From positions 16,864,001-16,928,000 of the forward strand of contig OZ296658.1 in NCBI GenBank assembly GCA_965655095.1: a stretch of DNA of 64,000 bases, written 5' to 3'. The position numbers and the translations under genes are program-made. The stretch is from Haplodiscus bocki (Eukaryota). The notes below the pieces were generated by a model. That model was not told the DNA's origin and did not search any database. It saw only the letters and a list, made by a program, of their open reading frames with translations. Shown piece after piece: positions 6,579-58,609 of this stretch (within the stretch, counting starts at the first letter, position 1; each line of letters begins with the position of its first letter).

Positions 6579-6711
6579 TGTAACATTCATCAGAGAAAAT
6601 ATACTCTAATTAACTAATTACTAAAATGACATAGAGCATGATGACTCATATGAACCCTCTATACTTCATAGGCGCAATTAATGATTCACCATTTGACAAA
6701 AAAAGCCCACC
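6579..6711 (+). repeat. Putative left part of the Gypsy 5' LTR, separated from its right part by the Helitron-like array
   Basis: Begins TGTAA, the inverted match to the TTACA at 58605-58609 that precedes the PBS. Ends at the GCCCACC array insertion point. I saw no TGTAA-type LTR start within 58255-58609. Confidence 0.55.
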
Positions 6712-7463
6712 CAGTGGAGGCTAGGGTACCAATTACCAGAGGAGGCTTTAGTGTATGTAAATTAGAAGAAAGTATTTCTTTCTTGAAGTCTTGACCCAAG
6801 TATGTTTATAATAGCGACAGTGGAAACCGTCTTGTGGGATTTAAATTTCCCATAGTTTGAAACATTTTTAGGGAATATATGGAAAAATCCTACAAAATGA
6901 ATCGCCCATTTCGCTGTGAGTTGTTTATGTTTTCCTTAGAAGTAAAAAAACGGTCTGAAGCGACTGCTACCAGTTGTGATTGTGCTCCAGCGATTATAAT
7001 TGTTTTTTTGTTGCAGTATTTGAAAAAAAAATTAGTGAAAGAAAATAGTGAACCATATGAGAAAACTTCGTTGTCATCAGAAGCAGTTGATTCTGAGTGG
7101 TAAAGTAATGTAAATTTTTACTCCAAACTCGTAAAACTTCTAATGAAACAGAAAGTTGTTCGAAACGATAATTTTGTCAGATTGAGAACTGAAAAAAGTT
7201 CAATAATATAATAATTCGAAGTACCAATTTTGCATTACTTTATAACCGAAAGAGAAAATGGTAATCACATATTACATTGAATAACCGATTTGAATTAAGA
7301 ACACAACTACGTGTTCAGAAAAATTCCGCTCAAAATAAAGTAAAGAAAAATATGATCAGAGTTCTAACAACCAACTAGTTGAAAGCTCTTTTTAACCAAT
7401 AATGTCCCCGAGTTACAACTACAAAAAAGTCAACAACAGGATTCTCCGAAAAATCACTGGAAA

Positions 7464-8468
7464 TTAATGTTGTATGTTCAACACATTAGGATTTGCATGC
7501 TGTAGAGGTGGTGGTCCACCGCGTGGTTGTTCCGCTTCGCCAATGCCGTTTTTCATGTTGTCAGGCACCTGAACTGCTGAGATCAAACGACAAACTCTGA
7601 CGCGTTGAACTTCCTGTGTGATTGATTCATCGCTCACACTACTTTTAACAAAACCAGAGACTCCCCATCCGCCGTTAGCATTGACGTGTTGAGAAACACA
7701 ATCACAATCAATAGCTTCGCCCAATTCACCTATATCGACAGAACTTGATGGGAGACGCAATACATCGGTGGTACAGAAGAAGGACGCGACATGATGACTT
7801 TGAGTCATATCACCACTCAGTGGGTCATCGTCTTCATCATCAACATCTCTTGCGATTATTCGTGTTGACAGGGTCCACGCAGAAACAGAACTTTTTTGAA
7901 TGCAAGCACAAACGCTTTCATTCTTCGTCGGTCTTCTGTCACAAAGTGTTCCCGAACAGGTTGGTGCAACCACAATTGAATGCAAGAATGTCAGTGGCCT
8001 ATTTGTCAACGTGTAATGGAACATTGCTGGAGTTGTTGGCGACGTGGAAATGGGTATGGGAGGGAAATCATTGTCATTCAAGTTATTCACAACTGTCAGT
8101 GGATGGCGAGTCTCCACGATGGGGTTATGCATGTCAGTTCCCAGACAAACGTTAGTGTACAGCGGCTCGACGACATCGACGCTGGACCCCACCGTCAGGT
8201 AACGATCAGAGAAAAGATTCGCTGATTTTTGAGCCGACTGTGAAATTACTACACAACACTCCTTACAGTTTTTCTGACCTATTATTGCCATTCGGTCGTA
8301 ATTTCCTTCAGGGGAAGGCCTTTTAAATTTGAGGGTTTGGGGCCGATAGAGCTGCAGTGGACGATCACTTCTTTTAAGGACAAGTACAATTCCTCGCAAG
8401 TGTGTATTCCCACTGATACGTAAAAAACCTTTCGAGGTCACCTGTGCCAGAGATACTCGACGATTCAT
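7464..8468 (-). CDS. 334-aa accessory protein of the Helitron-like element; possible zinc-binding OB-fold (RPA-like) ssDNA-binding protein
   Basis: Uninterrupted ATG-TAA ORF co-oriented with RepHel. The motif TCSGTLCDRR...VCAC...WTLSTRIIARD recalls the RPA70 C-terminal zinc ribbon. The function is inference only. Confidence 0.6.
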   Translation of the reverse strand: MNRRVSLAQVTSKGFLRISGNTHLRGIVLVLKRSDRPLQLYRPQTLKFKRPSPEGNYDRMAIIGQKNCKECCVVISQSAQKSANLFSDRYLTVGSSVDVVEPLYTNVCLGTDMHNPIVETRHPLTVVNNLNDNDFPPIPISTSPTTPAMFHYTLTNRPLTFLHSIVVAPTCSGTLCDRRPTKNESVCACIQKSSVSAWTLSTRIIARDVDDEDDDPLSGDMTQSHHVASFFCTTDVLRLPSSSVDIGELGEAIDCDCVSQHVNANGGWGVSGFVKSSVSDESITQEVQRVRVCRLISAVQVPDNMKNGIGEAEQPRGGPPPLQHANPNVLNIQH

Positions 8469-9453
8469 ATCTTAAGAACGCGACGTACTCAAATAAGTAA
8501 TCATAAATTAACTTGTGATGTTTAATATTTTACTTTCCAATTTTCACCGACAGTCTGACCGTTATCTACCTTCAACTAGACAAAAAGTTTCCTCAACCCA
8601 GACTAACTTTACAACGTAAACATACCTATGATTGTGCAGTTTAGGCATTGATTTCAAAGGCCTTTTTTCAAAACACTCGAAATACCTGCGATACAACAAC
8701 GAAATCTAATGACTTCAAAGTGTTCCTCTCACTGCTGCTTTCCAATTCACCAGAAAACTATACGTTAAACTGCTCATCGATTATTGTCAAGCAAGCTGAA
8801 AAATTGCTCTAATAACTATAATTAAAATTGATTTCCATTTTAAAAATGTAACAGTAAATAAAGGAGAAAAGTAAAAATTCCAAACGCACTCATTCATGAA
8901 ATCTACAATTTCAGATAAAAACACACAACATTCTTAGAACAATTCAAGATATCGAAAACACAAAAGTTTGTTTCCGAAAACAAAAGGTGCGGTTTTGAAA
9001 CACCGACACCTCAACAACAACACATTAAGCAATGAAAAAGTCGTTGCAAGTCTCCAATGAACGAAATAAACACGTTTTTTCAAGTAACACAAGCGGTGAT
9101 GAACACCGACGAATCAAAATTTGTCAGTTGGGCACGACACAATGTTATGCGTTTATGGAGGTCAGCACAGCACAATAGAAATAACAATAAGTTTGGGGCT
9201 CCACAAGAGCTGTTGTTCAGTACCGGCTAACGAGATAACCTAGCTACCTGATAAAAAAAGAGAAACAAATGAATGAAATCAAAATGTGGAAAGCTTGTTT
9301 CCGTGCGGAACAATACCCGCACCCAACAAAAAAACCTATGCTTCTACAGTTAAAAGTATTTTTCTTCCATGCGGAACTGGAAGTTTTTTTAACAGCTCTT
9401 AATATACGTCTTCAAGAGACCCGTTCAAATAATTTCGCCATTCTCTTGTTAGG

Positions 9454-10116
9454 TCATTCCGAGCAATTGAATATCTTGCGACCAATGTCAAGAAAAGCGA
9501 TTGTTAAAGACAAAGAATGATAACTATCAAAACCACTAACTCTATTTTCCAAAATTCTTTTCCTGTTAACTGCTCGTTTTGGGACAGAACATAAAGACTC
9601 TCACAAAAGACTACTCGTGAGACCATGTGAGTTTCTAAAATTGAATTTAAATGCAAATCATTGCCAGGTTCCAGCAGTTTCTTGTACCTTTGTGTGAGAA
9701 TTGCATTGCTTTTGATAAACGTGATACGAGCTGGACAAAAGGAAAGAGCATCAGAAAAGTCGTGCGCACCACGACGAGGTAAATAGGTGAAGCCAATGAC
9801 ATTGTATTGAGTAAGAAGTCGTAACTTTGGAAAAAAATTGATACGGGGTCAATGCTGGATTCTTCTTAGAAGAAAGACTGTTATTTACAGCATCATGCCA
9901 AAAAATTATTTTGTTTGATTTCGTTGGAATTTTATGTGTCCTCAAAAGCACTTCAATGTTTTTCTCTTTATTTGCATGATTTAAAGCCAAACCGGGAACG
10001 CTAAAAACTTTATTTTGTAAACCTCCGAACAGATGTGGTTTTTCATCCATTGCCCAGTACACAGACGAGGCTGCAACAATCAAATACTCATTCATTGTCC
10101 TGAAAAGCTCCTCCAT
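9454..10116 (-). pseudogene. Divergent SGNH/GDSL-hydrolase-like protein (about 220 aa) with one frameshift
   Basis: Blocks LIVAASS, FSVPGL and IIFWHDAVNNSL. After a frameshift in the A7 run at 9831-9837 the frame continues ...FTYLPRRG...PGNDLHLN to a TGA at 9454-9456. Order and spacing follow SGNH blocks I, II, III and V. Confidence 0.55.
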
Positions 10117-10899
10117 GTGTTAGTACTGAACCAGAAAAAGTTCGATTTCTAAGCAGAGAAAAAGATTAATAAAATGAAAGACGCGTTTAGTAAACTTCAG
10201 GGCCCAGAAAACTGTGAAATGAGAGATGTTTTTATTGCGAACACTTTGCAACTTTCACAACTGTTCTCCATTCAAGTATGAACAACTCAAAATTGTTGAA
10301 GAAACATTCCTTGAAAAAAATTTTTTTTTAAACATTTAACGTGCAACCACTAGTGCATTCAATCCCAACCAAAAACCATTCGACGCCTCCTCAATCCTCT
10401 ATCGCCTTCATAAAAAAACAAGTAGTTTAAACAACAGTCAATTGAAGTTTTCAATCGAGAATGATCAACAAAAGGCTATGGATAAAAAATGTTTCTGATG
10501 TAATATACATACTGGCAATTCAACTAAAAAACAGTAAATGAATATTGCACAAAATGGTTTTCAAAGCTGAGAGAAGATAATAGGTTGCCGAGCAACCAGA
10601 GAAAACAATAGGTTTACGGAAGTTTTTTAGAGCTGCAAACATTTTGAAGAAATCAGCACGAACTACACAATAATCACGAAACGGATGGAAACTGTGCAAC
10701 CAAAAATTGACACCCATCAACAGAGTTAACATTCAGTGAAGAAGAAACGTTGACATTGATTGAATTCAGTTTGTCCCGCCATATGCAGACCTTTTCACAA
10801 GGCATTCGCACTGCAACGACCCCTCTACGTTACTAGAACGATACAAATCAATTAACACGTCGTATTCGCTCAGATAGTCAGCAAGTTTCAGTTGCACAA

Positions 10900-11150
10900 C
10901 GATTCTTTTTCTGCGAGACATCGCTTTCTGCCAATCCACTTCGAATGAAGACAAAGAAATTCCGTTCCGGTTACATCAGCGAAACCATGAACATAAGCAA
11001 TTACTGTCCAGGGACGACGAGGTATGGGCTTTGTAAACTCACTTCCGTGCCCGGAATTGTGTTCATGAACACGCCGACGCAGGTTTTTGCAGCGACCGAC
11101 GTAGAACAAATGAGGCAACTTCAAACTCCTCAGCAAATAGCAGAAACCAA
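10900..11150 (-). other. GIY-YIG (SLX1-like) endonuclease domain at the RepHel C-terminus
   Basis: GFCYLLRS...FYVGRCKNLRRRVHEHNSGHGSEFT...RRPWTVIAYVHGF is in frame with the helicase. The FEVDWQ helix follows after a frameshift near 10955. Confidence 0.85.
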
Positions 11151-11319
11151 ACGAAGTGTTAGGAACTTCGCTAAACCGCAAAGGAAAAGGGCTTAATGTT
11201 TCTACAGAGCTCAGATTGCTTCTCATATCATTGTAGCTGTCCAGTAGGTTATTGATGAAAGGCAACAGCTGGTTTTCCTTGACTAACGTGTTGTCAATGC
11301 TTCTCATCGTGGCTAATCT

Positions 11320-12570
11320 GTTGCCCACGAAAGTAATATGGCTGAGATCTCTGACACGGCTAAGGAGGACGTATAGTTGTTGTTTGGCCCAAAACCTAAA
11401 CTTTCGGAAATCATTTATTTGAGTTGCAATCATCGGAACAGTATCACCCATCACTTTGTGAACAGTAAACGCCACGTACATTTTTAAAGGAAACTGCCAT
11501 CGCCGACAGACTGTGGAGGCGTTCAGCTTGGACAGGACAACCATTTGTTTCCTCAGTTTAACTTCTCGCCAATTGAATGAATTAACATTTGTAACTAGAG
11601 TAGATCTGAAAACTGGAGGAGCCACTTTAACTGTAATAGTGCCGCAGTATGTGTCAAAACTTTTAACAAAGCAAAGTTGTCCTTGCTGCAAATTTTCAGC
11701 CGGCAAATTACGGGTTGAGCGAACCACGGCACCTTCATGGACAAATAGTTGCTGGGGCTCCGTGCAAACACGATTCAAGAAAAGAGAAGCTGTCACGTTA
11801 GCTGGAACCCAATTTTGAGTTCCAGAGGGAGTCATTTCGTCAACGGCAATGAAAGTTGTCTTCGAAACATTGCCACTTTTTCGCACAGCCTCTATTCGTT
11901 CGTCAACTGCCTCCCGTTCAGCTAACCCAGTGCTAAGAGCTCGTAAACAATACATGGGAACTTCAGACCATGACCTCACAAAAATACAGTTCTGCTCAAT
12001 TATTGTTAACACTTCATTTCGGATAGTTTCGGTGGACGGATACTGGGCAATTAGGTCGAGGAGTCTTTGTCCGGCTATGTTGATCATTCGCACATACAAT
12101 TTTAGGTGATAAAAAGTAAAACACGTCAACACGGTGTTACTGCAGAGTAGGAAAGTACCGGAAGGAGGTGGTAACTGACGGAAATCTCCACTACAAACCA
12201 AAAACTTCCCGCCAAAAGGAAAACTGTTCCCACAAACACATTGCAAAACGGAATCCATGGAAGACCACAATTCGGACGAAACCATTGACACCTCTTCTAT
12301 GAAAATAACATGAATTCTTTGTAAATACTTGCATTTAACTGGATCCCTGCACAATTTTTCTAAAGCATATGAAGTCATCTGGGAAACCGATGCGTGATCA
12401 TTTACGGGAAACGGAATTTATGTGCAAACCACCAAAAATTGAAGCCCTTTCAGCCGCCAGACTGGTCACCACACAATTGAAACATTTTGCTAGGGCTGCA
12501 GCTATACAGTGAATCAGAACATGACTTTTACCGGTTCCAGGTGGCCCAACAATCACTTGGTGCTTCACAA
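11320..12570 (-). other. Pif1-family SF1B helicase domain
   Basis: Walker A GPPGTGKS, Walker B IFIEEVSM, FGGKFLVCSGDFRQLPP, QFPLKMYVAFTVHKVMGDT and QLYVLLSRV. Confidence 0.93.
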
Positions 12571-13919
12571 AAAATGAGGTACTTTTGTTAAATGTATTCG
12601 TTCTTTCCAGAATCAACTGCAGTATTCGACGTTGATCGGACACAGATTCAATTGTCTGAAGTGTTTCTTGGTATACTTGAGGCTGCCATTCCAAAGGACT
12701 GCTCAGTGAAGCCGACATGAATTCATTGAAGGAAGGGAAAGTAGTCGGGTTTTTCTCCAGTAAGGCTGCTACTAAGTTACTTTTCACTCTGTTGCTTTCT
12801 TCTAAAACTTGTTCCTCTGCTTTCTGGAAAATTGAGGACTCCAGAACATGGGGTAAATCTTTGCAAAAGGTTAGAAGATTGTTTTGAGTAGCCTCCTTCA
12901 GACAGTGATACGCCATTCCAACATGCCTGTCCAAGAGGGTTGATGAACCGGGGTAAAACCGCAGTTGCTCCAACAAAAAAAGCTTAGTCAATGAAACAAC
13001 TTCCTCATTGGTGGCTCCTTCAGGTGACGCAATCAAACCACTGTAGACGCAGGCGGACTTCAAGGACAAATCGGAAAACAAATCAATTTCAGTGGTAAAC
13101 TCACCAAAGGAGAGAAGATAATGAATGAGAATGTTTGATGTACTTTTAGGCACAATTATTGATAAAACAACTTGCACTAGTGGAAAACTCATATTCTCGT
13201 TTATGAAGTGGGACTTGTCTGGTATTAGTAAACATTCAAGTGCTTCCATTGCTTGCCGGACATAATGACTGTTGTTGCTTTGAAAATTCTCACATTAACT
13301 GATTAACGCTGTTAAATAATGCATGTTGACTGTAACTTTGAAACCAAAGTCGTCGATCCAAAACGAACAAAAAATATCTGATTTTATCATCGATTCAATG
13401 GACGCAGTTGGTGACACCTTGGTGCGGACAAACCAAGTGAAATATTTCTCTACAGTACGCAGCAACAAAAGTTCTGGAGGTCGTGCAGAAAAAGCTGTTA
13501 TTTTGTCATAAGACACAGAACTTTTCTCAGCATCAACAATGGTCCATTCTTGTGTCTGTGTGAAAAGTCTATGAGGAGGGAGCTCAAGGTACTTTCGCAA
13601 AAGAACTTGCTGACCATACAAAGGACCCTCCTTAGCAGGACGTACCATCCGTTCTTTCACAATACCAGCTCTTTTCTCTTTGGGAGTTGTCACTACGTGA
13701 ATGAAGTGAATGTTTAAACAAACATAAGGAAACTTCAGAAGCCACCACGCCAACTCTCTCAAGCTGATAGCTCTCCCAGTCAAAGTTTTACGCCTGTGGC
13801 AAGAGCTTTGGTTCTTTGACCAGCGAACTCCGCTTACTTTTTTCGTTTGACTGATCCTCAACGTTGTAGCCAAAAGTTGCATCAGTGGAACTACTGTAAG
13901 GGTTTACGGTACATCGTTC

Positions 13920-14760
13920 TTCTATCCCCGCAGCGTACTTGGCCAAATACCTTGCACTCATATAGACGTCACAAATTTGTAAATTTGTACTTGACCGAAC
14001 CAAAGCGAAAATTAGGGCGTTCGTTGGCGAAAAATGGGTACCTTTCTCTGACGGATAATGATGTTTACCACCATGTAGCTCATCAATGAGAAACAACTGA
14101 CCGGTCACGGAATCTTCAAACGCAACATTCAGTTTCCGTAGAATATCCCATGTCTCTTTGGATAAATTTTTCTCTACTTCCTTGTAGGAAAAAGCGACAC
14201 TGCTTGGATAAGCTGGAACTCTGCAAATTGACTTTTGTAATCTGTTCGATTTCTTGTGGCAACGCAATTTTGCTTTCATGCAATTATGACTTTGGTATTT
14301 TTGAATAAAGATCTGCAATTCTTCTTTCTCCTCCTGTGAAAGTTTTTCCGATCCCACTTCCGCGTTCAGATTACCTAAGAACGTTGATAAGCTACAACAA
14401 ACCCTCGATCGAACTTTTTCGCTGAAAAAATTTTCTGAAGTCCAGATAAGAAAATGGATATGTGGGAAGGCACTTGTTTTATCTTGAAACTCATAACGAT
14501 ACCACAACATCCGTACTCTGCCTAACGGACGTTCCGTAGAAGTTTCGATGTACTTCATCACGAGTCGGGAACTGCGTTCCCACGCTCGTAGCATTGTTAT
14601 CATTTCAGCTTGAACCGCAGAATTTCGAACCTCCGAGCTGGTTATTGTTTCAGGGTATTTCTCTTCCAGAGCTTGAAAAATCTTCCGTACCCCAGGATGA
14701 GTAGACTGACTGCAAGTGTAAATGAAAAAATAGGTTGCAGGTTCATCCTTCAGTGCAGCA
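13920..14760 (-). other. HUH/Y2 rolling-circle Rep domain
   Basis: Motif 1 YFFIYTC, motif 2 YEFQDKTSAFPHIHFLIW, motif 3 ARYLAKY with two tyrosines. Confidence 0.9.
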
Positions 14761-17700
14761 CTAAGTTCATTGACATTTTTTCGTGAATCACTCTGATCGA
14801 AGCGCATAGCTCCTTCTTTGACGCATTGGCCACTTACGTTTTTGTAAGAATCTTGTCCCCAGCCTCTGTTCAACACCAATCTAGTGTCTTTTCCGCGCAA
14901 ATCTAAATTAAAAACCGAATCAAAAGCGTACTGTATGCATCTGGGATCGGATGCCGTCAACAGAGATCCATCTTTGACTCTTGTACGCAGCATATCATCT
15001 AAGCTTGCGAAACCAACTCTGGCATTGCCATTCTTGTTGTTAAACAACGAAGCAGGTATAGCACCTGCGTAACTTCCGTCCTCATTCTGTTTCCAAAAAA
15101 TAGTTGGAAACATCATCGCCTCTGGTTGAATTAGTGGTACCGAATTACACGGCCTGGTAGCTGTAACATTTTCCAACAGTCTTTTGTGTCTTGCAGTCTT
15201 GTAAATGGGAGACCCTTTACTACGTTTCAGAAGGCCACACTGATCATTCAAAAGAATATGTAGAGGTAAATTGAAATTGGTGTCCGTCATTACAGGTTCC
15301 TTGACATAGCTTGGTTCCAGTGCAGCATCCGTTGCCTCCAGTAATGTCAATTCCAAAGAGTCCGTGTGTTCATTCAACAATCCTGCATCCATAAGGAAGT
15401 CACTTTGAGACGTTGACGATGAAGAGACAGAGTTGCTCCACACACCTCCATCTGAAAGATTTTCCTCGCTGACACTCCTGCCGTAACTACTGTCACCACT
15501 GATGCTTTTTGCAGCTTTGTCTCCATCGTTCTCAGACTTCGGCTCAGATTGGTTGTGACAGACCGAAGCGATGTCTTCCGAAGACGATGTCAACGGCAAC
15601 TTATCTGTTCGCCTCACATTCGGAACATCCGCAAGGTTGTCTTGCTGCATTACGTCTTTCCGACAAAGACAAGAGGTGCACTCGTTAACTGGACATCGGA
15701 GAAACGAAACACGACCACATTCACAGAAATAACCGCTTCCAGTAAAATCTCTGGTTAAAGGCAGCAAATGCTCCTCGCAATAAAACTTCCCTTGTCCAGT
15801 GAGTGTTCGGAAATAATCAGGTTTCAATTGTTTGGTGGTTTGCGTTTGCACAAGGTAATAAATTGCGACATCCCAATGACCTTGAGTGTGATGGTCGACG
15901 GCATCCAACGGTGAAAGGTTAACACGACTAGCAAACGGCCTCTTGTTCTCGTAAAGCCAAAATTTATCAAAAGAACCTCCATGCCTCACAAGCGATTTCC
16001 TGCTAATGTTATCTGTCAACGACGAAATGCACCTCAACTCGTAGTCTTTATCGTCAACAGTAATGGTTATGGGTGGGCAACTTTTGTTGCGCAAATTCTT
16101 TCCTGCTGTGCTGGTAACAATAACAGTTTGGGTCGAGCTTTGAAGTGAACTCTCAAAAGCAACAACCATTTTCGTCTTGTCCTTCAAGGGACAATGTGAA
16201 ACTTCATCTAAAGCTTATGTCAAAGTTTCCGCAAATATTATCGCGGGAAACTCACTTTGTGAATTGACTTCAAAAATTTTGGAAACTTCGGCCGTTAAAT
16301 TGACGCTACCAGTCCAATCCTTCCGACCAGAAAAAACATCAGGTTCCAAAAGTTTCAAAATGGGAGCAAGATTGGGAGTGGACATACAAGCTGACGACAA
16401 TTGATCGCAAAGAGGTGGAGAGATGCGAAGCGCTGTCTGTAAAAGAAACATCAGTTCAGAAGTTCTACAACTGATCTTAGGAGGAACGGCGCCAAAGAAA
16501 TTGTTACCATGGGCGAAAGCCAAGGATTTGAATTTAGCGCAAAGAGAGTTCTCCAGAGACACACCCAACGATGACATCAGAGATAAAGAGGACTTCAAAG
16601 AGACACTTGCTGTGGAGAGCAACGATCGCAGAGCTAATCCCTCGTTGGGACGAGACAAAGTCTGCTGTCGAATTTCTTCAGAACCAAGTTTTTGTAGTAA
16701 CACTTGTATATCTGCTCTGACAAAAGAACACTGCACCTCCGCTTTAACCAACAAATCCGACGTGCGAATCCAATTTCGCTTGGACGTTAATGATATACTG
16801 CTTATTCAAGAATAGTTACCAACAGCCTTGAGCAATTGGTATGTATGGCTGGAATATTAAGCCTTGACGTTTTTTTTGAGGCGCAAAGGTGGCATAATTA
16901 AAGCTTAAAGCTAACCTGTCTTTACAAGGCACGCTCAATCTTCCCAGTTGGGGATGTGTAGGTGGATGTAAAAACTGCAAGTTTGATCCATTGTGGTGAT
17001 CAGGACAAGTTCCAATAACAAGACCCTTGGAACAGTCAACGAAAGCAAAGGCGGAAATTTTGAATTTTTCCAGAACATTGAAGGGGTGCTCCAATCTGAT
17101 CTTATTCCACGAAAATGAGAGTTAAAAGACGACTCAAAGGACACAAAGCTTGGTATCAGTCCATTGATGAGATGATGAAACGGAATGAAGCCAGTTTCCT
17201 CAACGAAAGTGAAACAACCGAAGGGACATCGACAATTGGGATAGGCTTCTTGATCCAGTGCTTTTTCCAACCGTTCAGAAGATCCCGAATTAACATGAGC
17301 ATCAAAAATTGACCTTCTCTGTGTGGTGTCGGACACCAACGAAGGAACATTTTGTTCACGTATGGATGGATGTAAATGATCGAAACGATGCTTCCAACTT
17401 TGCTTTATCTCCGAAGGAATCATTGCATACAGAATTTTCACCTCATCATCCAAAAGTGAAGTGTCATGAATGAGGCTACTTAAAACGGTGGGCCAAGCGT
17501 CTTTCCAAGCGGCTGCGCTGCACTGAAAATATCGCAGACAAAATTGGCAAACTTTTTGACCAACACGACAATTGCGCCCAAATTTTTTTTTCCGCCCGCT
17601 AACATTTTCCAAAACAAAGAAAAACAATTCTCAATACTTCGTCGATCTTCGCAAACAATTGGCACATTCTAGGTCCCCAAAAATCTGTGAATCACTATGA

Positions 17701-17919
17701 GAAGTGGTGTCTGAAAAAGCAACAGCTTCACAGTAGTCTACTGTGACATCTGCTGAATCATTGTGTTGTGGTGAATTCTGTCGAAAATTGATCGTTGCAA
17801 AAAATGAGGGAATGAAGTTAGATAACGCTGGCAGCAGTGAAGTTTCCAAATGTGCAAACGAGCTCCGGTTGTGTTTTTCAACTTCATAATTACTGAAAAA
17901 TTGCCTTTTTGCAAAACTT

Positions 17920-45700: not shown

Positions 45701-48700
45701 TTTTAACAATTTGACACAAGTGACACCCGATCATCACCGCTTGGATTTAACAAACACTGGTAAAGCAAAACACATTTTTTACAATTCTAATGTGGTTAGA
45801 CACAACGATATTGAGAGATCATTTTGTTCCAAGACTCAAACTTTGTTTCTATCCAAGGTTCCATTTTACTCTCAATTTAGTAGCACAAAAATACACTGCT
45901 TTGCTCTACTTGATTCGAATTATTAACAAAACTAACGTAATTTATGTTTCAAAAACTTCGGTCAACGTTATCAAATAATACAAGCGACAGTGTCAAAAAA
46001 GTAATTTTCACTGTTTTTGCGCCAATGAACCAACTCAAACCTCTTAACACGCCTTGGTATTGCTTTTAGAAAGACTCACTGATCTTCCGACATCAATATG
46101 GGTGAACTGCAACGCATTCTTTGGCAGAACAAAACTTCGATCATTGTAAACAGTGAAAATTTATTCATTTCTCAATGTACTTGGGAAACCAAAGTGCTTG
46201 CAAACAAGCCAAATGGAAGTGCAATAGGGCATGCAACTTTGTGAAAGAACAGCAACAATAACTGAAAGACTTTGTTTCCAATCAAGATGTTCTCTACAAA
46301 TGATAGATATTTTTACACAATTCCCTAGCAAGATTTCCATGTGCCTTCTTGTAACAAGTTTCCAGGGAAATTTTCATCAATAATTTTGAAGAAAACAACT
46401 TGTCCTTGAACTCATGTTCTACGAAACTTTTTTGAGAGGGTCAACTGGAAGCAGCAATCCTCTTTTCGATTTCGTATAAAGTGCATGTTCATAATAACGG
46501 CCAAGTTAAGAAGGAATTGGATTTTTCTTAACCTTCCTTTGAGAATTATATTATCGCCCAAAAAAACATTAGAAGCTTTTCCTCAAAAAGTTGGCTGTCG
46601 CCACAATCTCAAGATATGTACCACTTACATTTGTAGAAAATCTCGAAAAACTTCGTCGCTAAAGTAACAGATTAAGATCAGTTGTCTCACTTAAAACTTT
46701 GTATAAATTTATCTGAATGAACGAAGTCAACAATTATCAAAAGCTCTAATTGCAAAGTTCGACAAATGATATTGTTCGAGAGATTACACTGAAAAAGAAA
46801 GCTTGCTTTTGAATCTATCAGAAGATATCCTCTCTACGTTGAGGTAGTGAAACAAAAAAGCTGACTTCACCTAAAAACAGGAGTCCGTCCAATCCTTTAC
46901 TGTGCACTTGCAAAGATTTTTGCACATAACGAACTTTTACTCCATTCTCCTTCGTGCACAAATTGATTGAAAGTTAAAAACATTTGCTAATAAAATGAGT
47001 ACCGGAATAAATATCTAACTTGTCTTAAACTGTTGTAAAACTGTTGGTGCTAAATGACTTCAGGGTCAGATCTTTCAGTGGTTTGAATACAGAGGAGACG
47101 GTTCTGTTACTTAGTGGCTCATCCCTTACGGTAGAGATATGATTGGGTAAAGCTCAGTAAACACTTCGTTTTTCTCACGATTTTGAAATGAAAACTACAT
47201 TCGCCAATATCAATGTGGCATGGCCATGTTTTTGTGGTAACTTGTCGTTTATGGTCCTAAGACAATGTAAATGAAAAAAAATAACAAGTTTCAGCAAAAG
47301 ATTAGTGATTAAGACGAGAAAAAAACAATGATCTTTTCTATTCTTTAAACCTTCCTCCAAGGGGTCTACTTTTTGAAGCAAATCCCTGCGGTTCTTTTGG
47401 TCCGTAAAATTGAGGAACCCACTATTCACTATTACGTCCGCAAGAAAGATTAGAAATTCAGTTTTGTAATACCTTTCGACACTGCTAAAGAGCACCAAAA
47501 AAATTTTGCCTTGTAGGAGGTTCAAAAGTCTTGAGGAAATTGAATGGAAGGTAAATTGGAGAATTGTTCGAATTTCCGGGCTGTGATCGAATCAAAGCAT
47601 TCATGGAAAATGAATGAAAGATTCCATCAGCGAATAATTTATTCCAAATTTCAAAGGAACATCTAAACGTAGTCAAAACCACAAAACGTGTCTTTTTTGA
47701 TAAATCAGCTATCGAAGGTAAGCAAAAAGCAAAGCACAATCGCAGAAAGATCTCAAAAAAGTTTCATATGCCCTGGAAAAATTTCAAAATCGACAAGATT
47801 TGTTTTCGGCCCATTGTCAGACGAAATTGAGACAAGATCCCGACAGGCAAATCGGAAATTCAGTTTTTTTCTGAAAACAACAACAAGAAAGCAAATTCTG
47901 GGGAAGAAGATGACGTAGTGTACAACAACATGACATAGCTAACCCCGATTATCACAGCTTTGAATCAACAAAAACCGCTAAAGCTAAATTCATTTTCTAA
48001 CTTCTTATTGTGCTTAGGCATATCGATACTGACAGATAATTTTGTTCTAATACTCAAACATAGTTCTTCTCCAAGGTTTCGTGGTTAGCCAAGGCTGGTG
48101 GTTTAATTTTATACTATTCTGGTGTACTTGATGCCAAATAACAACAATACTAACATAACCTAATTTTTTAAAACTTCGGACAACTTTACCAAATAAAACA
48201 TGTGACAAAGACAAGAAAAAACCATTTCTCCTGAGTTTTCGCTCAAAAACGAGCCTAAACTACATGATGCACCCTGAAACGGCATACAGTATGCCTCAAT
48301 CTGCTTCCGACACCAAAATGGGTTACCTGCAAAGTCTTCATTATCAGTACAAAACTTCGATCAATGTACACAGTGAAGGTTTATCAATTAACTAAAACTT
48401 TTTCAAAGTACCTGGGACACCAAAAATGCTTGCAAACATGCCAAATGGAAATGCAAGGAGGAAATTTGGGCAGGGGTTGTCCCCTGTGAGTGTCACTTTG
48501 AAAATAATGAGCGAAAATGGCAGAGACTCAAAATGGAAATTCAAAAAATTCGACGAAAAACGTGAATTTCTCCGGGAATTTTCATCCAATTCCCACATCT
48601 GACCCCTCCCCTCTACAGAAGCGCCAGACAGTGCTCGACAATATTGCAGTCCTGTGTGGAAGCACTCCGAGCCTCCCGAAAAAAGTTATGGGCCAAAAAA

Positions 48701-48971
48701 TGTCAAAAAATGGCAAAGACACCAATTTTGAGACGAAAAATCGTCATTTTGGTCAACAAAAAATGTTTCAATCAAAAAATGTCAGCCGCAACTTCTTCTT
48801 ATATCATCAATTGGTGACGGCATGCAAAATTTGAGGCAAATAGTATGGTCCAACTCTGAGCTCGTGATTTTTGTCAAAAGATGTTTCAGCGTAAGCTATG
48901 AGCAATAAGAGGGCCAACAGGACCCTACCCGTCGGCCCAAATTTAAATGGGGGGAAAAGCCCCCGCCCACT
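42733..48971. mobile_element. Non-autonomous 6.2-kb unit, copy 4 (6239 bp)
   Basis: Co-linear with copies 1 and 2; ends GCCCACT. Confidence 0.88.
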
Positions 48972-51900
48972 TAATGTCAGGACCGTGTGGGCTGTAAGTT
49001 TTTCGTGACTTGTGGAGGAAAGGTGGGCAGCCTCGCCAGCCTACGTTCGGTGAGCTTGGTGCAACTGATATTGCGGCCCGTTCGTCCTCGCTCCGCTACG
49101 TTGCGATTCGCTCCGACTGATTGCAATAACTTATGGAGGCCCATTTTTCAGTGTGCTTATAGATTGACCCACTTTTGTTTTTGTTTATTGAAACATTACG
49201 ATGTAGCCCAATGCAAGCGGTCTGTCGCGTTTCGTCAACGCTGAACGTCAGTGTTCTGAATTCACCGTGGCGGTCTTAAGTCACCACACGACAAATTGTT
49301 TTGAAGTTATGAGCGAAGGTTCCGGGCACCAAAAAAATTCAAGTCCAGAGTTTTTTTCAACTAGGCAACTTTGTTGCCATTGTTAGGATCCCGTGGGGAT
49401 GTCTAAACGGTGACACGAGCGTCATTTTTATTGCTTTATCGACCCAATGCTTGGCACATGCGTTCCGCTTTCGTTCCCATACACGCGGGTGAGAAACGTT
49501 GTCGGATTGCGCTCATAAGTTGGAGCGCTTCCACCCAATTATATTGATGCGCTTTCATTACAACAGCGGAGCTGAATTCACAGGATGACATTGATTTTTT
49601 GCGTCTGGAAATTTGCAACCGTTCGCCGTCTCCATTGCCCTATGGTCAATTGGAACGGGCTCACCGACTCACCGGAGTTACTCAATCAAACAACAAGTAA
49701 CAGTTCTGTAAATTCACTGATGCGTACAAGTTCCCAACGAATCGTAACAAGTAGTCTTGCTTGAGCACAAGACTTCGAAATGACGGAAGATTCCGAAAAC
49801 GATGTACTCAACTGCCCTAACCCCGTTTTGTTAAGGTTGCATAACGCCCTCGTGGTGAAAAATCACATTAAAGTGGTCATCGTGAACTTGTTCCATTGGC
49901 GTCTTTCGAAAAAAACGCATAGGTTTAGGACTAATTCGTTTTCCTACAAACATAAATGTAGGACCATTTATCTCAAACAAGGAAATGAATTAAATAAACA
50001 ACGTGTAATGGTCGGCTGGGCCCAACTACTACGTACTAGGTGTCCGTAGAAGCCAAAATACTTTGATTGAGCAGAATTTTTCGACATATCTTTGAATTTC
50101 GTGACTTAATGACTGAAAATTGAAACAGCAACGTTTACACAAATGATGAAACTTTTGACCCGACTGAGGATTTTATGACAACTACTAAAGAAGACAAATC
50201 TGATGACGCATCTCAGCAACCTGCAGCGATGTTACTGTGTATGCAAATTTTTTAGCTCAGAGACATTTCAGCTTTGAGTTGCCAATTAGTTGATCCGTTG
50301 GTTAAAAAGTGTTGACTTTCGAACAAAATATAAGCTAAAAGTTGTATTTCTCAATGAAAGGCCCTGCCTGATCAATACATGAAGCAGAAATACGCATCGC
50401 AGAAATAAAATCTAATTTGATAGCATTTTTTAGAGGAGCGTCAAAGTAATGGCAGTTTCCATCTGAATATTTGAAGACTCTCAATATTTGCCTTTAAACC
50501 CAATGTGAAAACTTTAAAAATTTCGAGAAACACACACATTGAATCTTGGTGGTAAAGAGTGAGTCAAAATTTTCGAAACACACGACACGCACTTGAAATA
50601 AAACCGGTATTAGAAGATTAAGCTTGACGCTCAGACCACAAATTTTCTTTTCCAAGCACAGAGCTGATGTAGCGGGAAGTAACCAGTTTTGCGCCACTAG
50701 TTTACTTCTTCTGAAAGTTTGAAAAAGCTCAATGTAGATCTTCGGAAAAAAGGCTGCACTAAGTAGAATCAGCATTAATTTTCGTGTTTATCACTAGAGT
50801 ATTAAAAAGTAATCAAGTTAATATGCCACACGATAATCTACACTACTGACTGAGGGGATATAAACAAAGTACTATGTCAAAACATAAATTCACAAAATTG
50901 TCACTGTCGGGGACCAATTTTCGGACAATGAAAACTGTTATCATGATTCAGTGATTTTTTAAACATCATTGTTTTCAATAAAAGCAAGCTTGCTGGGAAA
51001 ATGATTGACTGATTTTCAGGATTGTCCCGAATAAAAAAGTGAACCGTAAAATCCATCACAAAGACAGACAATTAATGTCGGTTGGCACCTTTACGGTATC
51101 GTTTATTGACATGCAATTATGTCATCTATGGACGCATACAAATGGCACCTGAATCTTTTTTGCGTTGAAATAAAATCAAAGAAAAATGCAAAGGAAATGT
51201 ATAGCATACTCCAGAATTTGAGTGGAAAAATTGAGAAAGAGCACGAAAAAAAAACAAAAAAATAACAGATGGCTTCAATGGAGCTGAAGAGCGAGTGGGC
51301 CTACTTTTTTGGGGTTTTGCCGGACACGGTTTTTGAAAAAAATCAAAAGCTGAAAAATGAATTCCTAAAAACAACTTGTGTTGCCTTCAAAAAAAATTTA
51401 GAAAAAAACTTAAACTTTTTTCAACAAGTTAATTGCCCCAAAATTTTGGCAAAAGTGTACAAACTTTTTACTGAAAAAAATCGTCAGCAAGTTTTTTTTA
51501 CAAAAAGCAGCCACAGGGACCATGTGCTTCACTTGTTAGCGCTCAATTAAACTTTGGACTGAAAATTAAAGAGATAACTGAGCTTTTGTAAATTTAACGG
51601 CGATACGCATCCTGTGAAATTTTTCGAAAAATTGGAAATGCGAAAAATTGAAAAAAATTGACGCAATCAAACTTATTGCAGCGGGATGGCCACGGAACGC
51701 AGGTTCTTAGCTCATCAAAAACAATTTATTTGAGAGATTTTTGACCGTAAATGAAATTTTTTCCAAAAAAACGGCAAAATCACGCCCAAAAATTCAGAAT
51801 TCTCAATGAAGAACAACTTTTTAGCCAAAATTCCAGCAGGAACAAGTGATTTTTTCATCGAATCAGTGCCGCATGCAAAAAAATAGCCAAATCGTAAGCT

Positions 51901-52013
51901 AAGTTTTCGAAATCGTGCTCACTGGCACACATGGCATATGTGTTACTAAAGGTCTCGGCACGGGGCCCCTACGCCGGCCTCGTAATGTAAATTGGGCGAA
52001 ACCCCAAACCAAC
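48972..52013. mobile_element. Non-autonomous 3.0-kb unit (3042 bp)
   Basis: About 200 bp near the left end resembles the 2.1-kb family. The right end has GCCGCATGCAAAA, GGGGCCCCTAC, hairpin TTGGG-CGAAAC-CCCAA and CCAAC. No convincing coding sequence. Confidence 0.75.
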
Positions 52014-55000
52014 AAGAATGACGACGCGGTGCGGCAAGTAGGGCTTTATTGTCGACGAAAGGCGGGCGGCCCCGCCCGCCTACGGTCAGGTGAGCGTGGT
52101 CCAACGGGTATTGCGGCCCGTTCGACCTCGCACTCGCTCCGCTACGCTGCGCTCCGCTCCGCCTGAGTGCGATGACTTATACAGGCCCGCTAGTCTGTTG
52201 ACTGTACTTACAGGTTGACGCAACTAAGAATTGGTTTGATGCAACATCGAAATGTAGCTTTATCAATGCGCTCTGCTAACTCCCAATACTGTTTATCATA
52301 AAGCAGTAGCAGTTGCTACTAGAGACATTTGGAATTGGATAGGGTAGAGAAAATATCTCAGTTCAACTTTCCATTTGATTGAAGAAATTGGAAAATTGAC
52401 AATGAAGAGAGAGTTTGGCCCGCAGAATTGGTCACCCGAGGCGACCAAATCTGCGGAAATTGTTCTTGCCGATGGAATATTACTGCCACAAAGCAGATAC
52501 GATACTTGGCTGCTGAAAAACCCATGATTTTGTAACCAGTTTTTTGTCCCAGTTTTACTAGCCTAAAGATGGTCAGAGGCTCGAGGTATAGATACAAATA
52601 TTTCAAAAACATCGGTCTTTAAAGAAGTTTCAGCTGTGGATTCCTTTAAGACATGGTTCAACTGTGAAATGCTGGATATCCCAAGGTTTTTAACTCAGAG
52701 TGCAAGGTTTTTCAACTATCTAATACTCGCTTTGAAAAGAAAAATCTCATTTTTTTCACTTCAGTTTTAATGCGAAAATGTTGTTTAAGGTAGCAGTAAA
52801 TATTCAGTTCCCATCATTAGTTCGATCCCAGGGAACACTTCTTTAGGACACTAAGTAAGAGGATAAAGGTTAAAAGGTAGCAAGTTTTGACATGGTTTTG
52901 AAAGGAGAAACAAATCGACGAAAGCTTATGTTGTGTATCATGAAATCCAATTGTTTGCAAAAATGGACAGCAAAAACATTTCCAAAACCTCCAAAAATCT
53001 CTCTTACATTTTCTGATTTGGCTGCGGCGCATACTCAGTTATCTGAGGCGTCGCTCAATTGTTGTTGGTTTAGTTTAAGCCACCGCTTCTGGTAGTGAGG
53101 GAAATGATTGTTGACAAACCAACAACTGGGCGCGGTCAAGTTGGAGGAATATCATGTTAATATGTGAAGTAGTCAGCAGTTTGGCAATTCCGGTAATAGC
53201 AGGCACCAGAGTATCATGTTTGGCTGGTAAAGCAATGATAACATCATACATTTTTACATGTGCGTTCTGACGTCCACGTCCAAATTTTTGAAACTTTGAT
53301 GATTTTTAAAAATTCAAATGTCTAGAGCACAAAATATTTAAGCATAAACCACAAAAAAAAGTAAAAAAGAACGCAAGTTTTCTATAGCAACGTGCTACTT
53401 GTGGTACTCTTATACGTCTGCAGACACTCCTGTCCAAAAAACTTGAAACTATCATGGAAACAAGACACAAAAAAAGAAAAATTCGATGCAGTTATGACCA
53501 AACGATGTCAATAAACAGAGAACTTTTTCAATTTGCAGGCAAAAAAGACCCCGGATTTCCTGCCAAATGGATTTGCCGGGACTGTATTCGGCCAGGGGTT
53601 ACCCCCTGTGAGGGTCAAAAGGAAAAAAAATAGGCGAAATTGGCAAAGACAAGGAAATGATTTCTTGATTGGCGCCAGAAAAAGGGCCATATCTCGCGCA
53701 CTTTTTTTTTGTAAAGACACTAAAAAAACATCAGCCGACGCCCAACAAAGTGCCGAACAAAACATGTCTGCTATAACTAGGCACTCCGAGCAACCCAATT
53801 TGAGATATTTGCCGTCAAAGTCAAAAAATTCCCGTTTTTGCATCTCTGGGACCGAAAATCGCGTTTTTGGTCAACAAAGTCGTCGATTTGGGCAAAACAT
53901 CAGCAGGACAAAGTTCCTAGAATGTACCCGGAAGGCCGTGTGCCAAATTTCAGCCGAATCTGTTGGAAACTTTTCAAAATCGTCTAAATTTACCCCCTAG
54001 CTGCCTAGTATAAATGCTTCGCCCTTTTTTCTATAACGCTTGCACATGGGGCCCTACCCTAGCTCGCAGCATTATTTTTTTGGTAAAACCCGACCACCAA
54101 GAATGACGGCGCGCATAAAAATTAGGGCTTCATTATCGACGAAAGGCGGGCGGCCCCGCCCGCCTATGGTCAGGTGAGCGTGGTCCAACTGGTATTGCGG
54201 CCCGTTCGACCTCCGATCAGTCGGAGCGGAGCGGAGCGCAGCGATGACTTATGGAGGCCCGCTAGTCTGTCGACTGTACCAATTTTTTGTTGCAACTAAG
54301 AATTGGTTTGATGAAACATCTAAATATAGCTTTCTCAATGAGCTCTGCTAACTTCCAATACTGCGTATCATAAGACAGTAGCAGGTGCTACTAGAGACAT
54401 TTGTAATTCGATACGGTAGAGAAACTATCTCAGTTCAACTTTCAATTTGATTGAAAAAATTGGAAAAATGACAATGAAGAGGGAGTTTGGCCCGCAGATT
54501 TGGTCACCCGAGGTGACCAAATCTGCGGAAATTGTTGCTGCCAATGGAATATTACCGCCATAAAGCAGACACGATACTTGGCTGCTGAAATACCCATGAG
54601 TTTGTAGCCCGCTTTTTGTCCCAGTTTTATTAGCGTAAAGATGGTCAGAGGCTCGAGGTATAGATACAAATATTTCAAAAACCTCGGTCTTTAAAGAAGT
54701 TTCAGATGTGGCTTCCTTTTAGGCAGGGTTCAACTGTGAAATGCTGGATATCCCAAGGTTTTTAACTCAGAGTGCAAGGTTTTTCAACTATCTAATACTC
54801 GCTTTGAAAAGAAAAATCTCAATTTCTTCACTTCAGTTTTAATGCGAAAATGTTGTTTAAGGTAGCAGTAAATATTCAGTTCCCATCACTAGTTTCAGCC
54901 CAAGGAACACCTCTTTAGGACACTAAGTAAGGGGATAAATGTTAAAACGTAGCAAGTTTTGACATTGTTTTGAAAGGAGAAAAAAATCGACGAAAGCTTA

Positions 55001-58000
55001 AGTTGTGTATCATGAAATCCAAATGTTTGCAAAAATGGACAGCAGAATCATTTCCAAAACTTCCAAAAAATCCTTCGTACATTATCTAATTTGGCCGCGG
55101 TGCATACTTAGTTATCTGAAGCGTCGCTCAATTGTTGTTAGATTAGTTTAAGCCACCGCCTCTGGTAGTGAGAGAAATGATTGTTGACAAACCAACAACC
55201 GCGCGCGGTCAAGTTGGAGGAGCATCATTTTAATATGTGAAGTAGTCAGCATTTTGGCAATTCCGGTAATAGCAGGCACCAGAGTATCATGTTAGGCTGT
55301 TAGAGCAATGATAACTTCATACAATTTTAAATGTGCGTTTTGAAGTCCACATCCAACTTTTTTTAAAACTTTGATCATTTTGAAAATTTCAAATGTATAG
55401 AGCACGAAACATTTCATGATAGACAACAAAAAAAGTTAAAAAAACGCAACTTCTCAATAGCAACATGCTACTGGTGGTATCCTTGTACGTCTGCAGACCG
55501 TTCTGTCCAAAAAACTTGAAACTTTCATGGAAGTAAGACCCAAAAAAAAGAAAAATTCGGTGCAGGTATAACTGAACGCTGTCAATAAACAAAAAACTTT
55601 TTCAATTTGCAGGCAAAAAAAGACCCCGGATTTCCTGCCAAATGGAATTGTTGGGACCAAATTTGGGCAGGGGTTGCCCCCATTTGAATGTCAAATGGAA
55701 AAAAGTAGGCAAAATTGGCAGAGACATCAATTCGATTTTTTCATTCGTGCCTGAATAAATGCCATTTCTCGCCCATTTTTTATCGTAAAAACAACATTTA
55801 CGCCTCAGCCAACGCCCAACGAAGTGCTGAACAAAACATGTCTGCTATACCTTGGCGCTCCGAGCAACCCAATTTGAGATATTTGCCGTCAGATTCAAAA
55901 ATTTCCCATTTTTGCCTCTCCGGGACAGAAAATTGCATTTTTGGTCAACAAAGTCGTCGATTTGGGCAAAACGTCAGCATGATAAAGTTCTTAGAATATG
56001 TCCAGGATGCCGTGTGCCTATTTTCAGCAAAACCTGTTGGAAACTTTTCAAAATCGTTTAAATTTAACCCCCAACTGCCTAGTATAAATGCTCCGCCCTA
56101 TTTTCTATAACGCTCGCACATGGCGCCCTACCCAAGCTCGCGACATTATTTTTTTGGTAAAACCCGACCACCAAGAATGACGGCGCGCGGCAAAGTTGGT
56201 AGGCCTTCATTGTCGACGAAATGCGGGCGGCCCCGCCCGCCTATGGTCAGGTGAGCGTGGTCCAACTGGTATTGCGGCCCGTTCGACCTCGCATTCGCTC
56301 CGTTACGCTGCGCTCAGCTCCGACTGAGTGCGATGACTTATACAGGCCCGCCTGTCTGTTAACTGTACTTATAGGTTGACGCAACTAAGAATTGGTTTGA
56401 TGCAACATCGAAATGTAGCTTTATCAATGCGCTCTGCTAACTCCCAATACTGTGTATCATGAAACAGTAGCAGGTGCTACTAGAGACATTCGTAATTCGA
56501 TACGGTAGAGAAACTATCTCAGTTCAACTTTCAATTTGATTGAAAAAATTGGAAAAATGACAATGAAGAGGGAGTTTGGCCCGCAGATTTGGTCACCCGA
56601 GGTGACCAAATCTGCGGAAATTGTTGCTGCCAATGGAATATTACCGCCATAAAGCAGACACGATACTTGGCTGCTGAAATACCCATGAGTTTGTAGCCCG
56701 CTTTTTGTCCCAGTTTTATTAGCGTAAAGATGGTCAGAGGCTCGAGGTATAGATACAAATATTTCAAAAACCTCGGTCTTTAAAGAAGTTTCAGATGTGG
56801 CTTCCTTTTAGGCAGGGTTCAACTGTGAAATGCTGGATATCCCAAGGTTTTTAACTCAGAGTGCAAGGTTTTTCAACTATCTAATACTCGCTTTGAAAAG
56901 AAAAATCTCAATTTCTTCACTTCAGTTTTAATGCGAAAATGTTGTTTAAGGTAGCAGTAAATATTCAGTTCCCATCACTAGTTTCAGCCCAAGGAACACC
57001 TCTTTAGGACACTAAGTAAGGGGATAAATGTTAAAACGTAGCAAGTTTTGACATTGTTTTGAAAGGAGAAAAAAATCGACGAAAGCTTAAGTTGTGTATC
57101 ATGAAATCCAAATGTTTGCAAAAATGGACAGCAGAATCATTTCCAAAACTTCCAAAAAATTCTTCGTACATTATCTGATTTGGCCGCGGTGCATACTTAG
57201 TTATCTGAAGCGTCGCTCAATTGTTGTTAGATTAGTTTAAGCCACCGCCTCTGGTAATGAGAGAAATGATTGTTGGCAAACCAACAACTGGGCGTGGTCA
57301 AGTTGGAGGAGCATCATGTTAAATTGAAAAATAAACAGCAGAACGGTATTTTTGGTAAAAGCACGCCCCGGAGTATCTTGTGAGGTTAATGAAGCCTTGC
57401 AATAAATGCACTGCAAAAAAATTGTTTTAATGATCCAAATTAATTATTCTTTGAAGACATCTGTAAATTTGTAAACTTCAAACGAATGCATCACAAAAAA
57501 TTCGTTAAAAAAACAGAAAAACGAAAGGTTCCCAACTTCCCAATGCAACATGCTACTTGTGTTACTGCTGAACTTACGTGGATCGTTGTGCCCGAAAAAG
57601 ATGAACTTTTAATAATGTGAGGACGTAAAACTAAAAGCTTGCTTGCACCTATACGAGAACGATATCAGTAAACAAAGAACTTTTTCAATTTGCAGGCAAA
57701 AAAAGACCCCGGATTTTCTGCCAAATGGATTTGCCGGGACTGTATTCGGCCAGGGATTACCCCCTGTGAAGGTCAAAAGGAAAAAAATAGGCGAAATTGG
57801 CAGAGACAAAAAAATGATTTCTTGATTGGCGCCAGAAAATTGGTCATATCTCGCTCATTTTTTTTCGTAAAAACACCAAAACTACATCACCTGACGCCCA
57901 ACAAAGTACCGAACAAAACATGTGTGCTGTAGTTTGGCGCTCCGAGCAACCCAATTTGAGATATTTGCCGTCAAATTCAAAAAACTCCCATTTTTGCCCC

Positions 58001-58254
58001 TCCAGGACCGAGAATTGCAATTTTCATCAACAAAGTCGTCAATTTGGGCAAAATGTCAGCAGGACAAAGTTCTTAGAATGTGCCCAGGAGGCCGTGTGCC
58101 AGTTTTCAGCAACATCTGTTGGAAACTTTTCAAAATCGTCTAAATTTACCCCCCAGCTGCCTAGTATAAATGCTCCGCCCTTTTTTCTCTAACGCTCGCA
58201 CATGGGGCCCTAACCAAGCTCGCGACATTATTTTTTTGGTAAAACCCGACCACC
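52014..58254. mobile_element. Three tandem 2.1-kb non-autonomous units (52014-54098, 54099-56172, 56173-58254)
   Basis: Each starts AAGAATGACG, followed by a TAGGGCTT-like motif and a GGCGGGCG/CGCCCGCC-type hairpin. Each has a GCTCC microsatellite and a 17-bp-stem palindrome, and ends with a GCCCTA motif...GACCACC. Confidence 0.87.
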
Positions 58255-58609
58255 CAGGAACACAAAAAGCAATTTCCAGAACAATAGAACTTATTAAAAA
58301 ATATATTGGACTCCGAGCCCTCATCATATGCATGAGTTAATTTCTGATAAAAACGACGATTCTTTAAACAAAAAAACTTTAAAAGTTTCCGCAGGCAAAA
58401 GAATTAATATGGAAGCAGTAAATTTAATAAAGAAAAAGTGATGAATTATTATTAATTCACGGAGGGAAAAGAACTCTCTAGACTCCTACTGAACAGTTAA
58501 CTTGAAGACCAACAATAAATTCTTTCGAAAAACTCTTCCTCACGCCCCGCACTGAAGATAGCCGAAAACAAAAGAGATCGCAAACTAGTAGAAGCACAAA
58601 GATTTTACA
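58255..58609 (+). repeat. Right part of the Gypsy 5' LTR
   Basis: Contains AATAAA and ends TTTTACA immediately before the TGG of the primer-binding site. Confidence 0.65.

Follow-up and report, generated by a model that had tools for sequence, protein, structure and literature searches.

Helitron-like elements (HLEs) are thought to choose their targets by hardly more than a dinucleotide. Canonical Helitrons (HLE1) have TC...CTRR ends and sit in A^T sites (the caret marks the insertion point or joint throughout), and Helitron2/Helentron elements (HLE2) insert in T^T, bear short asymmetric terminal inverted repeats of 8-16 nt and have DUF6570 as marker domain; a captured GIY-YIG nuclease is known from a single Helentron, HelenSM92 of Sphagnum (PMC11417382). 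Helitrons of Paramecium finish with CCAA at their right end and insert strand-specifically in CCC(C/A)AA telomeric repeats, the orientation of their open reading frames (ORFs) varying between elements (PMC13085455). Tandem Helitron arrays have been described in bat, silkworm, maize, rice, Arabidopsis, Metarhizium and Hydractinia (PMC4067079, PMC5148889, PMC11934779). In bacteria, the target GTTC of IS801 and IS1294 from the IS91 family equals the terIS cleavage motif GTTC and is not duplicated, and termination failure in this family carries neighbouring DNA along (PMC13181058). In this study, we analysed a stretch of 64,000 nt from Haplodiscus bocki (contig OZ296658.1; hereafter the window), in which Helitron-like units of different families form one uninterrupted train, together with related loci from other assemblies.

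The polar train probably grew as one Helitron-like element after another was inserted, unit-precisely, at joints of elements already in place, and we hold this reading with moderate confidence. It draws on the anatomy of the train, on a conserved joint that is used exclusively and is absent within units, on differences in age between insertions, and on the same architecture in other assemblies. BLAST of the window against itself and direct reading of every boundary revealed 13 units of five size families (13.3, 6.2, 1.0, 3.0 and 2.1 kb), which abut without spacer, head-to-tail and on one strand, over 51.5 kb (6712-58254, +; Table 1). A terminal CCACC is found in 11 of the 13 units; the two exceptions are unit 9 (CCACT) and unit 10 (CCAAC). 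A preliminary description of this DNA had given the same number of units and size classes, the single orientation, the lack of spacers, these termini and the GCCCACC in the left flank (6705-6711), all of which were borne out. Its train range, 6705-58262, includes the GCCCACC flank at the start; at the other end, the last unit stops at 58254 and the final 8 nt are flank. Tandem Repeats Finder, whose longest period of 500 nt is below the unit sizes, reported no repeats in the window.

According to the boundary reading, about 28 nt on the 3' side of each CCACC track the downstream unit, independent of the upstream neighbour; for example, TAGACAACGGG occurs alike after units of 13.3, 6.2 and 1.0 kb. 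This segment is therefore the left end of the downstream unit and not a spacer. Both ends of unit 1 are conserved in the related loci L001, L002-L004, L007-L010, L012 and L013, and the left end of unit 10, TAATGTCAGGACCGTGTGGGC, is the homologue of TAGGGTCAGGACCGCATGGGC in L009. Since CCACC termini and their subterminal hairpins are located at right ends on the + strand, this strand was taken as the transposon top strand.

For a joint consensus, 26 element-to-element joints with at least eight left-end types were collected from the window and from the ENA assemblies ERZ25074608 and ERZ26859043. These two assemblies contain the same trains, including runs of a ~1.04-kb non-autonomous unit between autonomous copies. 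The consensus is G(24/26)-M-C-C-A-C-C^N-A(26/26)-G(25/26); L013 offers four further joints beyond these 26. The window has 12 copies of the heptamer GCCCACC (2.9 expected; 12 was reached in 0 of 100 shuffles). On the top strand of the whole window, all 12 CACCNAG sites are unit boundaries, and in other loci, too, CCACC^NAG occurs at boundaries only. Unit interiors contain no top-strand CACCNAG, compared to 7.9 expected (0/1000 dinucleotide-preserving shuffles), and the bottom strand of the interiors contains six, compared to 6.3 expected. When each family is represented by a single unit, the top strand likewise has none, at an expectation of 4.0 (p ~0.02). The avoidance of CACCNAG within units is strand-specific; therefore, the heptamer appears to be recognised on one strand, and to be used without exception or else removed from interiors. 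The preliminary description had proposed CCACC as the target. CCACC does lie inside the conserved joint, but it is not sufficient on its own, as the array contains further CCACC sites that carry no insertion, 17 on the top strand and 34 on the bottom strand; the core is G-M-CCACC^N-A-G.

Edges between element and non-element DNA were available from three loci on each side (window, L001 and L012). The left flanks end in GCCCACC, CTTCACC and ACACACC, respectively, thus all three with CACC, and those of L001 and L012 with CACC only, without CCACC. The right flanks start with CAG, CGG and TAG, i.e. NAG in two of three. When the flanks of the window are rejoined, they form the 10-nt joint consensus GCCCACC^CAG, a pattern absent elsewhere in the window. 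The number of CACC motifs exceeds the number of units by one, both in the window and at two apparently solo relatives, in agreement with the earlier suggestion that an insertion regenerates the motif at its far end. The train flanks showed no similarity to units or related loci, nor to one another, and their last 90 nt fold no better than shuffles, unlike right ends. With neither unit similarity nor a right-end-like fold, a nature of the flanks as decayed units was not demonstrable. A weak hairpin rich in AT, with CCCT as its loop, lies in the left flank at the distance typical of right ends; it is not significant.

The units differ considerably in age. Copies of the 2.1-kb family are 86-88% identical (divergence 12-14%), those of the 6.2-kb family 93.5-94.8% (5-6.5%), and those of the 1.0-kb family 91-93%, except for units 6 and 8 with 99.2% (0.8-8.6%). 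As these divergences differ widely between families, several insertion episodes have to be assumed. The non-adjacent units 6 and 8 are separated by unit 7, which is 93.3% identical to each of them, and units 5 and 7 share 91.4% identity. The near-identical tract of units 6 and 8 (11 differences in 1002 nt) is delimited almost exactly by the unit, since mismatches return 15 nt left and 5 nt right of its boundaries. Similarly, a foreign, 58%-identical unit in L007 lies precisely between two 80%-identical relatives. The train also switches five times between unrelated families, each time exactly at a joint. The identity of units 6 and 8 across a 93% unit and the different family ages argue for serial, unit-precise insertion into joints, as far as can be judged from sequence comparison; serial addition had already been preferred over one runaway event in the preliminary description.

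On the top strand (+), units begin with N-A-G at their left end and finish with G-M-CCACC at their right end, where it would be preceded by a subterminal hairpin. According to the mechanism that we consider likeliest, the HUH domain would nick one top-strand site, (C)CACC^NAG, at the left boundary, the right boundary and the target. At the left cleavage site, CACC would be contributed by the upstream DNA, and at the right cleavage site it would be the element's own end. Each inserted unit would rebuild a perfect target at its own right end, and every joint would be a target. The uniform direction of the units would result from the fixed strand and side of insertion. HUH would presumably be the cutting domain and a single-stranded circle the intermediate, and sub-trains bounded by two joints might be mobile as a block. 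Nicking of the opposite strand, or some of the specificity, may be due to the GIY-YIG nuclease. A wider reading, which we put forward more tentatively, is that a separate, widespread OTU-Rep-Pif1-GIY-YIG lineage forms, together with a conserved 330-aa accessory protein, a site-specific cassette system whose nick site is its own joint and which thereby builds polar mixed-family trains. If so, any run of units between two joints would be mobilisable, like integron cassettes or ISCR elements.

Some of these observations could also be obtained without any target specificity, if rolling-circle concatemers or read-through of the terminator produced the array and unequal crossing-over and gene conversion at conserved joints shuffled the units. 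This is the usual account of tandem Helitron arrays (PMC4067079, PMC5148889, PMC11934779), and with 20-60 nt conserved on either side of the joint in all families a recombination substrate is possible. Also, the 13.5-kb tandem duplication in L002, which lies off the termini, indicates that ordinary duplication does happen in such regions. However, read-through of a single element cannot juxtapose families and hence cannot produce family switches exactly at joints, and an unequal crossover duplicating unit 6 predicts a neighbouring copy of ~99% identity, which was not seen. Both the strand-specific absence of CACCNAG from interiors and the joint-like outer flanks would be left unexplained by concatemers, and we regard this account as unlikely. 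A similarly low probability is assigned to site choice by the GIY-YIG nuclease instead of HUH, where the extra CACC would be a target duplication or repair product of a homing-like double-strand cut. The interiors avoid the site on one strand only, which is easier to reconcile with a protein that reads single-stranded DNA than with an enzyme that cuts both strands. In favour of the nuclease, sequence preference in cutting is a property of GIY-YIG homing enzymes and of Penelope-like element nucleases, the domain occupies the position of the Helentron AP endonuclease in 16 of 19 long relatives, and one CACC in surplus of the unit number is what a 4-bp duplication would lead to as well. Yet IS91-family HUH elements follow the same logic with neither a second nuclease nor a duplication (PMC13181058). 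It is very improbable that the array is a segmental amplification of the satellite type, or that the assembly went wrong in a repeat-rich region, with CCACC merely inherited: the copies diverge by 0.8-14% and have private indels and a 2.5-kb replacement, hence they are not collapsed duplicates; five unrelated families are involved; and the same joints occur in two other independent assemblies. Long repeats do assemble poorly, and one related ENA contig was flagged as circular, as collapsed arrays can be.

Several points weigh against serial insertion into joints. Gene conversion of exactly one unit is a possible, though less parsimonious, source of the identity between units 6 and 8. Neither a circle nor a polymorphic filled or empty joint was seen. 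The target CACC cannot be assigned to one side from the sequence, and a 4-bp duplication would be compatible with it. The edges number three, without a verified empty site, and what is taken as flank may be units that have decayed or escaped recognition. Unused internal (A, G or T)CACC^NAG sites exist in relatives, yet two edges used only CACC, so that any rule of site choice is provisional. Finally, the transposase gene of unit 1 is dead, and autonomous partners of the other four families lie outside the window.

The coding content of unit 1 supports the preliminary assignment to rolling-circle transposons by a Rep domain with HUH and Y-x3-Y motifs, a Pif1 helicase and a GIY-YIG nuclease. In comparison with P0018, an intact relative of 2684 aa, tblastn showed the transposase gene to be split over three frames with internal stops, and it is therefore a pseudogene. 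The HUH motif PHIHFLIW and the tyrosine motif SARYLAKYAAG of its Rep are conserved in alignment A1. Helitron_like_N of Pfam matches this Rep with E 7e-6, under the gathering score, and the Atlas neighbours are Helitron_like_N clusters without exception. Downstream of Rep, a Pif1-family helicase was recognised by Pfam PIF1 matches and by solved Pif1 structures (E 7e-11), followed by a C-terminal, SLX1-related GIY-YIG nuclease; the N-terminal OTU domain is weak and was detected in P0018. The 334-aa accessory ORF is kept in every autonomous relative fetched and is intact beside the broken transposase gene. It has a conserved Cys pattern (PTCSG..CDRR...C.C) and no Pfam match, and its AlphaFold model was unusable (pLDDT, the predicted local distance difference test, 32). 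In the other four train families, no coding relationship to unit 1 was detectable; since they have the end architecture in common with unit 1, they are regarded as non-autonomous sister families.

With the + strand as top strand, the gene of unit 1 runs antisense to its termini, as do ORFs of some Helitron2 elements (PMC3627910). The same holds for the RepHel genes of L002, L009, L010, L012 and L013, and those of L001, L003, L004, L007 and L008 are in sense orientation; the orientation thus differs between subfamilies, even inside one assembly. A word-based search found five relatives only. An exhaustive HMMER search yielded 767 cluster representatives, and 184 of these reached E<=1e-30. The GIY-YIG domain is present in 16 of 19 long relatives (22-46% identity), and the elements look like a distinct Rep(HUH-Y2)-Pif1-GIY-YIG lineage. 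A metagenome scaffold of 821 nt in ENA ERZ23495554 (L011; ROBB19-1_SAMN11878271_METAG-scaffold_171501) encodes a 93-aa fragment with 91% identity to the Rep ORF of unit 1, therefore a very close relative has been sequenced elsewhere. In one metagenome scan, two distant relatives only (29-33% identity) were detected, without the joint.

Table 1. Features of the train, its edges and its coding regions in the window.
Feature	Position	Strand	Length	Remarks
Left edge, non-element DNA ending GCCCACC	6705..6711	+		Without similarity to any unit and without significant fold
Unit 1, 13.3-kb autonomous-type	6712..20026	+	13315 nt	Left end CAGTGGAGGC..., right end ...CCCTGACCACC; genes on minus strand
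Accessory ORF, intact	7464..8468	-	334 aa	48-65% identity to ORF downstream of RepHel in L001-L004, L007-L010, L012
Frameshifted homologue of second accessory ORF	9582..10095	-	~217 aa (ORF)	tblastn of L002:3686-4339, ~51% identity, two frames
Decayed OTU-Rep(HUH, Y-x3-Y)-Pif1-GIY-YIG transposase gene	10981..18398	-		tblastn collinear with residues 81-2618 of P0018
Unit 2, 6.2-kb non-autonomous family	20027..26263	+	6237 nt	
Unit 3, 6.2-kb family	26264..32511	+	6248 nt	Left joint with 7-bp hairpin
Unit 4, 6.2-kb family	32512..38715	+	6204 nt	~2.5 kb (34396-36933) swapped for unrelated sequence
Unit 5, 1.0-kb family	38716..39733	+	1018 nt	Left-end type a
Unit 6, 1.0-kb family	39734..40735	+	1002 nt	Left-end type b; 99.2% identity to unit 8
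Unit 7, 1.0-kb family	40736..41733	+	998 nt	Left-end type a; 93.3% identity to units 6 and 8
Unit 8, 1.0-kb family	41734..42732	+	999 nt	Left-end type b; recent unit-precise copy of unit 6, or reverse
Unit 9, 6.2-kb family	42733..48971	+	6239 nt	Terminus CCACT
Unit 10, 3.0-kb family	48972..52013	+	3042 nt	Terminus CCAAC
Unit 11, 2.1-kb family	52014..54098	+	2085 nt	
Unit 12, 2.1-kb family	54099..56172	+	2074 nt	
Unit 13, 2.1-kb family	56173..58254	+	2082 nt	Final train unit
Right edge, flank starting CAG	58255..58257	+		Rejoined flanks GCCCACC^CAG

Further features were observed within and beside the train. At the joint of units 2 and 3 (26257-26279), the right-end GCCCACC and a GGTGGGC 9 nt into unit 3 form a 7-bp cross-joint hairpin; other 6.2-kb copies have GGTGCGC instead of GGTGGGC as hairpin partner. 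The 6.2-kb units (2, 3, 4 and 9) contain an internal tandem duplication of ~550 nt with ~75% identical copies, in unit 2 at 20293-20708 and 20843-21257. The replaced part of unit 4 includes a 211-aa ORF (34385-35020, minus); it weakly resembles sequence that lies upstream of Rep in both L001 and L004 (E 1e-6 to 7e-8, 24-27% identity). To the left of the train, a remnant of a BEL/Pao-type integrase (DUF5641, rve, Integrase_H2C2) is located at 687-1853 (+), and to its right an aspartyl protease retrotransposon remnant at 59667-60218 (+), inside a strongly A-rich stretch with C-over-G skew (58-64 kb).

Two related loci showed peculiarities of their own. The train contig L003 (ERZ26859043, contig ctg79433_56.38x_c, 59123 nt) was flagged 'circular' by the assembler, which may indicate a collapsed array or a genuine extrachromosomal circle. 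In L002, an autonomous copy recurs with 99.8% identity at a period of 13,504 nt (L002:9465^9466 and L002:22969), and the duplication junction is internal, 64 nt before the true element end. Judged by its sequence, this repeat is to be regarded as an ordinary tandem duplication and not as joint-mediated.

The evidence favours an insertion of new copies precisely at joints where older copies meet, a behaviour undescribed for Helitron-like elements. If true, a lineage that uses its cleavage site also as target would represent a eukaryotic counterpart of the IS91/ISCR logic, the origin of large one-directional blocks of mixed elements would be explained, and a defined site of 7-10 nt would be at hand for the biochemistry of HUH target choice. 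The clade, with its 184 representatives at E<=1e-30 and GIY-YIG in most of those examined, would extend the scheme of HLE1, HLE2 and Paramecium elements.

In comparison with known systems, the units differ from canonical Helitrons, since they start with NAG, end with CCACC and are flanked by CACC and YRG instead of showing TC...CTRR in A^T. Insertion in T^T as in HLE2 was found at 0 of 26 joints and 0 of 6 edges; the misfit with AT and T-rich sites noted in the preliminary description is thus confirmed against the published ends (PMC11417382). The large RepHel with N-terminal OTU domain and added nuclease, the putative hairpins near both ends and the non-autonomous derivatives sharing the ends of autonomous elements resemble Helitron2/Helentron. 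For the subterminal hairpin, significance was reached in unit 1 (z -2.1) and the 6.2-kb family (z -3.2), but not in the 2.1-kb family, L001 and L012. Differences to Helitron2/Helentron are the use of CACC^NAG instead of T^T, the absence of DUF6570 and AP endonuclease from P0018 and all 19 long relatives, and the Helitron_like_N match under the gathering score. Inverted repeats did not reach significance. To detect them, the reverse-complemented left 34 nt were aligned locally with the own right 95 nt and scored against 500 shuffles: most families were near the shuffled mean, the best results were reached by 8/500 and 18/500 shuffles, and own-family scores were no better than cross-family scores.

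Known tandem Helitron arrays also consist of head-to-tail copies, with different Helitrons directly adjacent now and then; in contrast to the train described here, they are mostly of one family and are ascribed to terminator bypass or concatemers. In the literature searched, a conserved joint that serves as target was not described for Helitrons, no mixed-family trains were described for the IS91 family, and no named third class (Helitron3/HLE3) fits the present clade; a full-text search for joint sequences returned unrelated primers only. The clade seems to be without a name in this literature, Repbase and Dfam being outside that search. With the telomere-targeting Helitrons of Paramecium, the third HLE clade, the elements would share a target that mirrors the element end and a strand-specific insertion that fixes orientation, but the Paramecium target is the host telomeric repeat and not the own joint, and GIY-YIG is not mentioned for these Helitrons (PMC13085455). 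Similar in logic are IS801 and IS1294, as anticipated by the IS91 analogy in the preliminary description: they are HUH rolling-circle elements whose short specific target lies beside the initiating end and is identical to the motif cleaved at the terminating end (PMC13181058). They differ in being bacterial, in their four-base target and in having neither helicase nor GIY-YIG. By analogy, the present elements would work like the IS91 family in logic only, and because of their Pif1 and GIY-YIG domains their proteins are not of the IS91 type.

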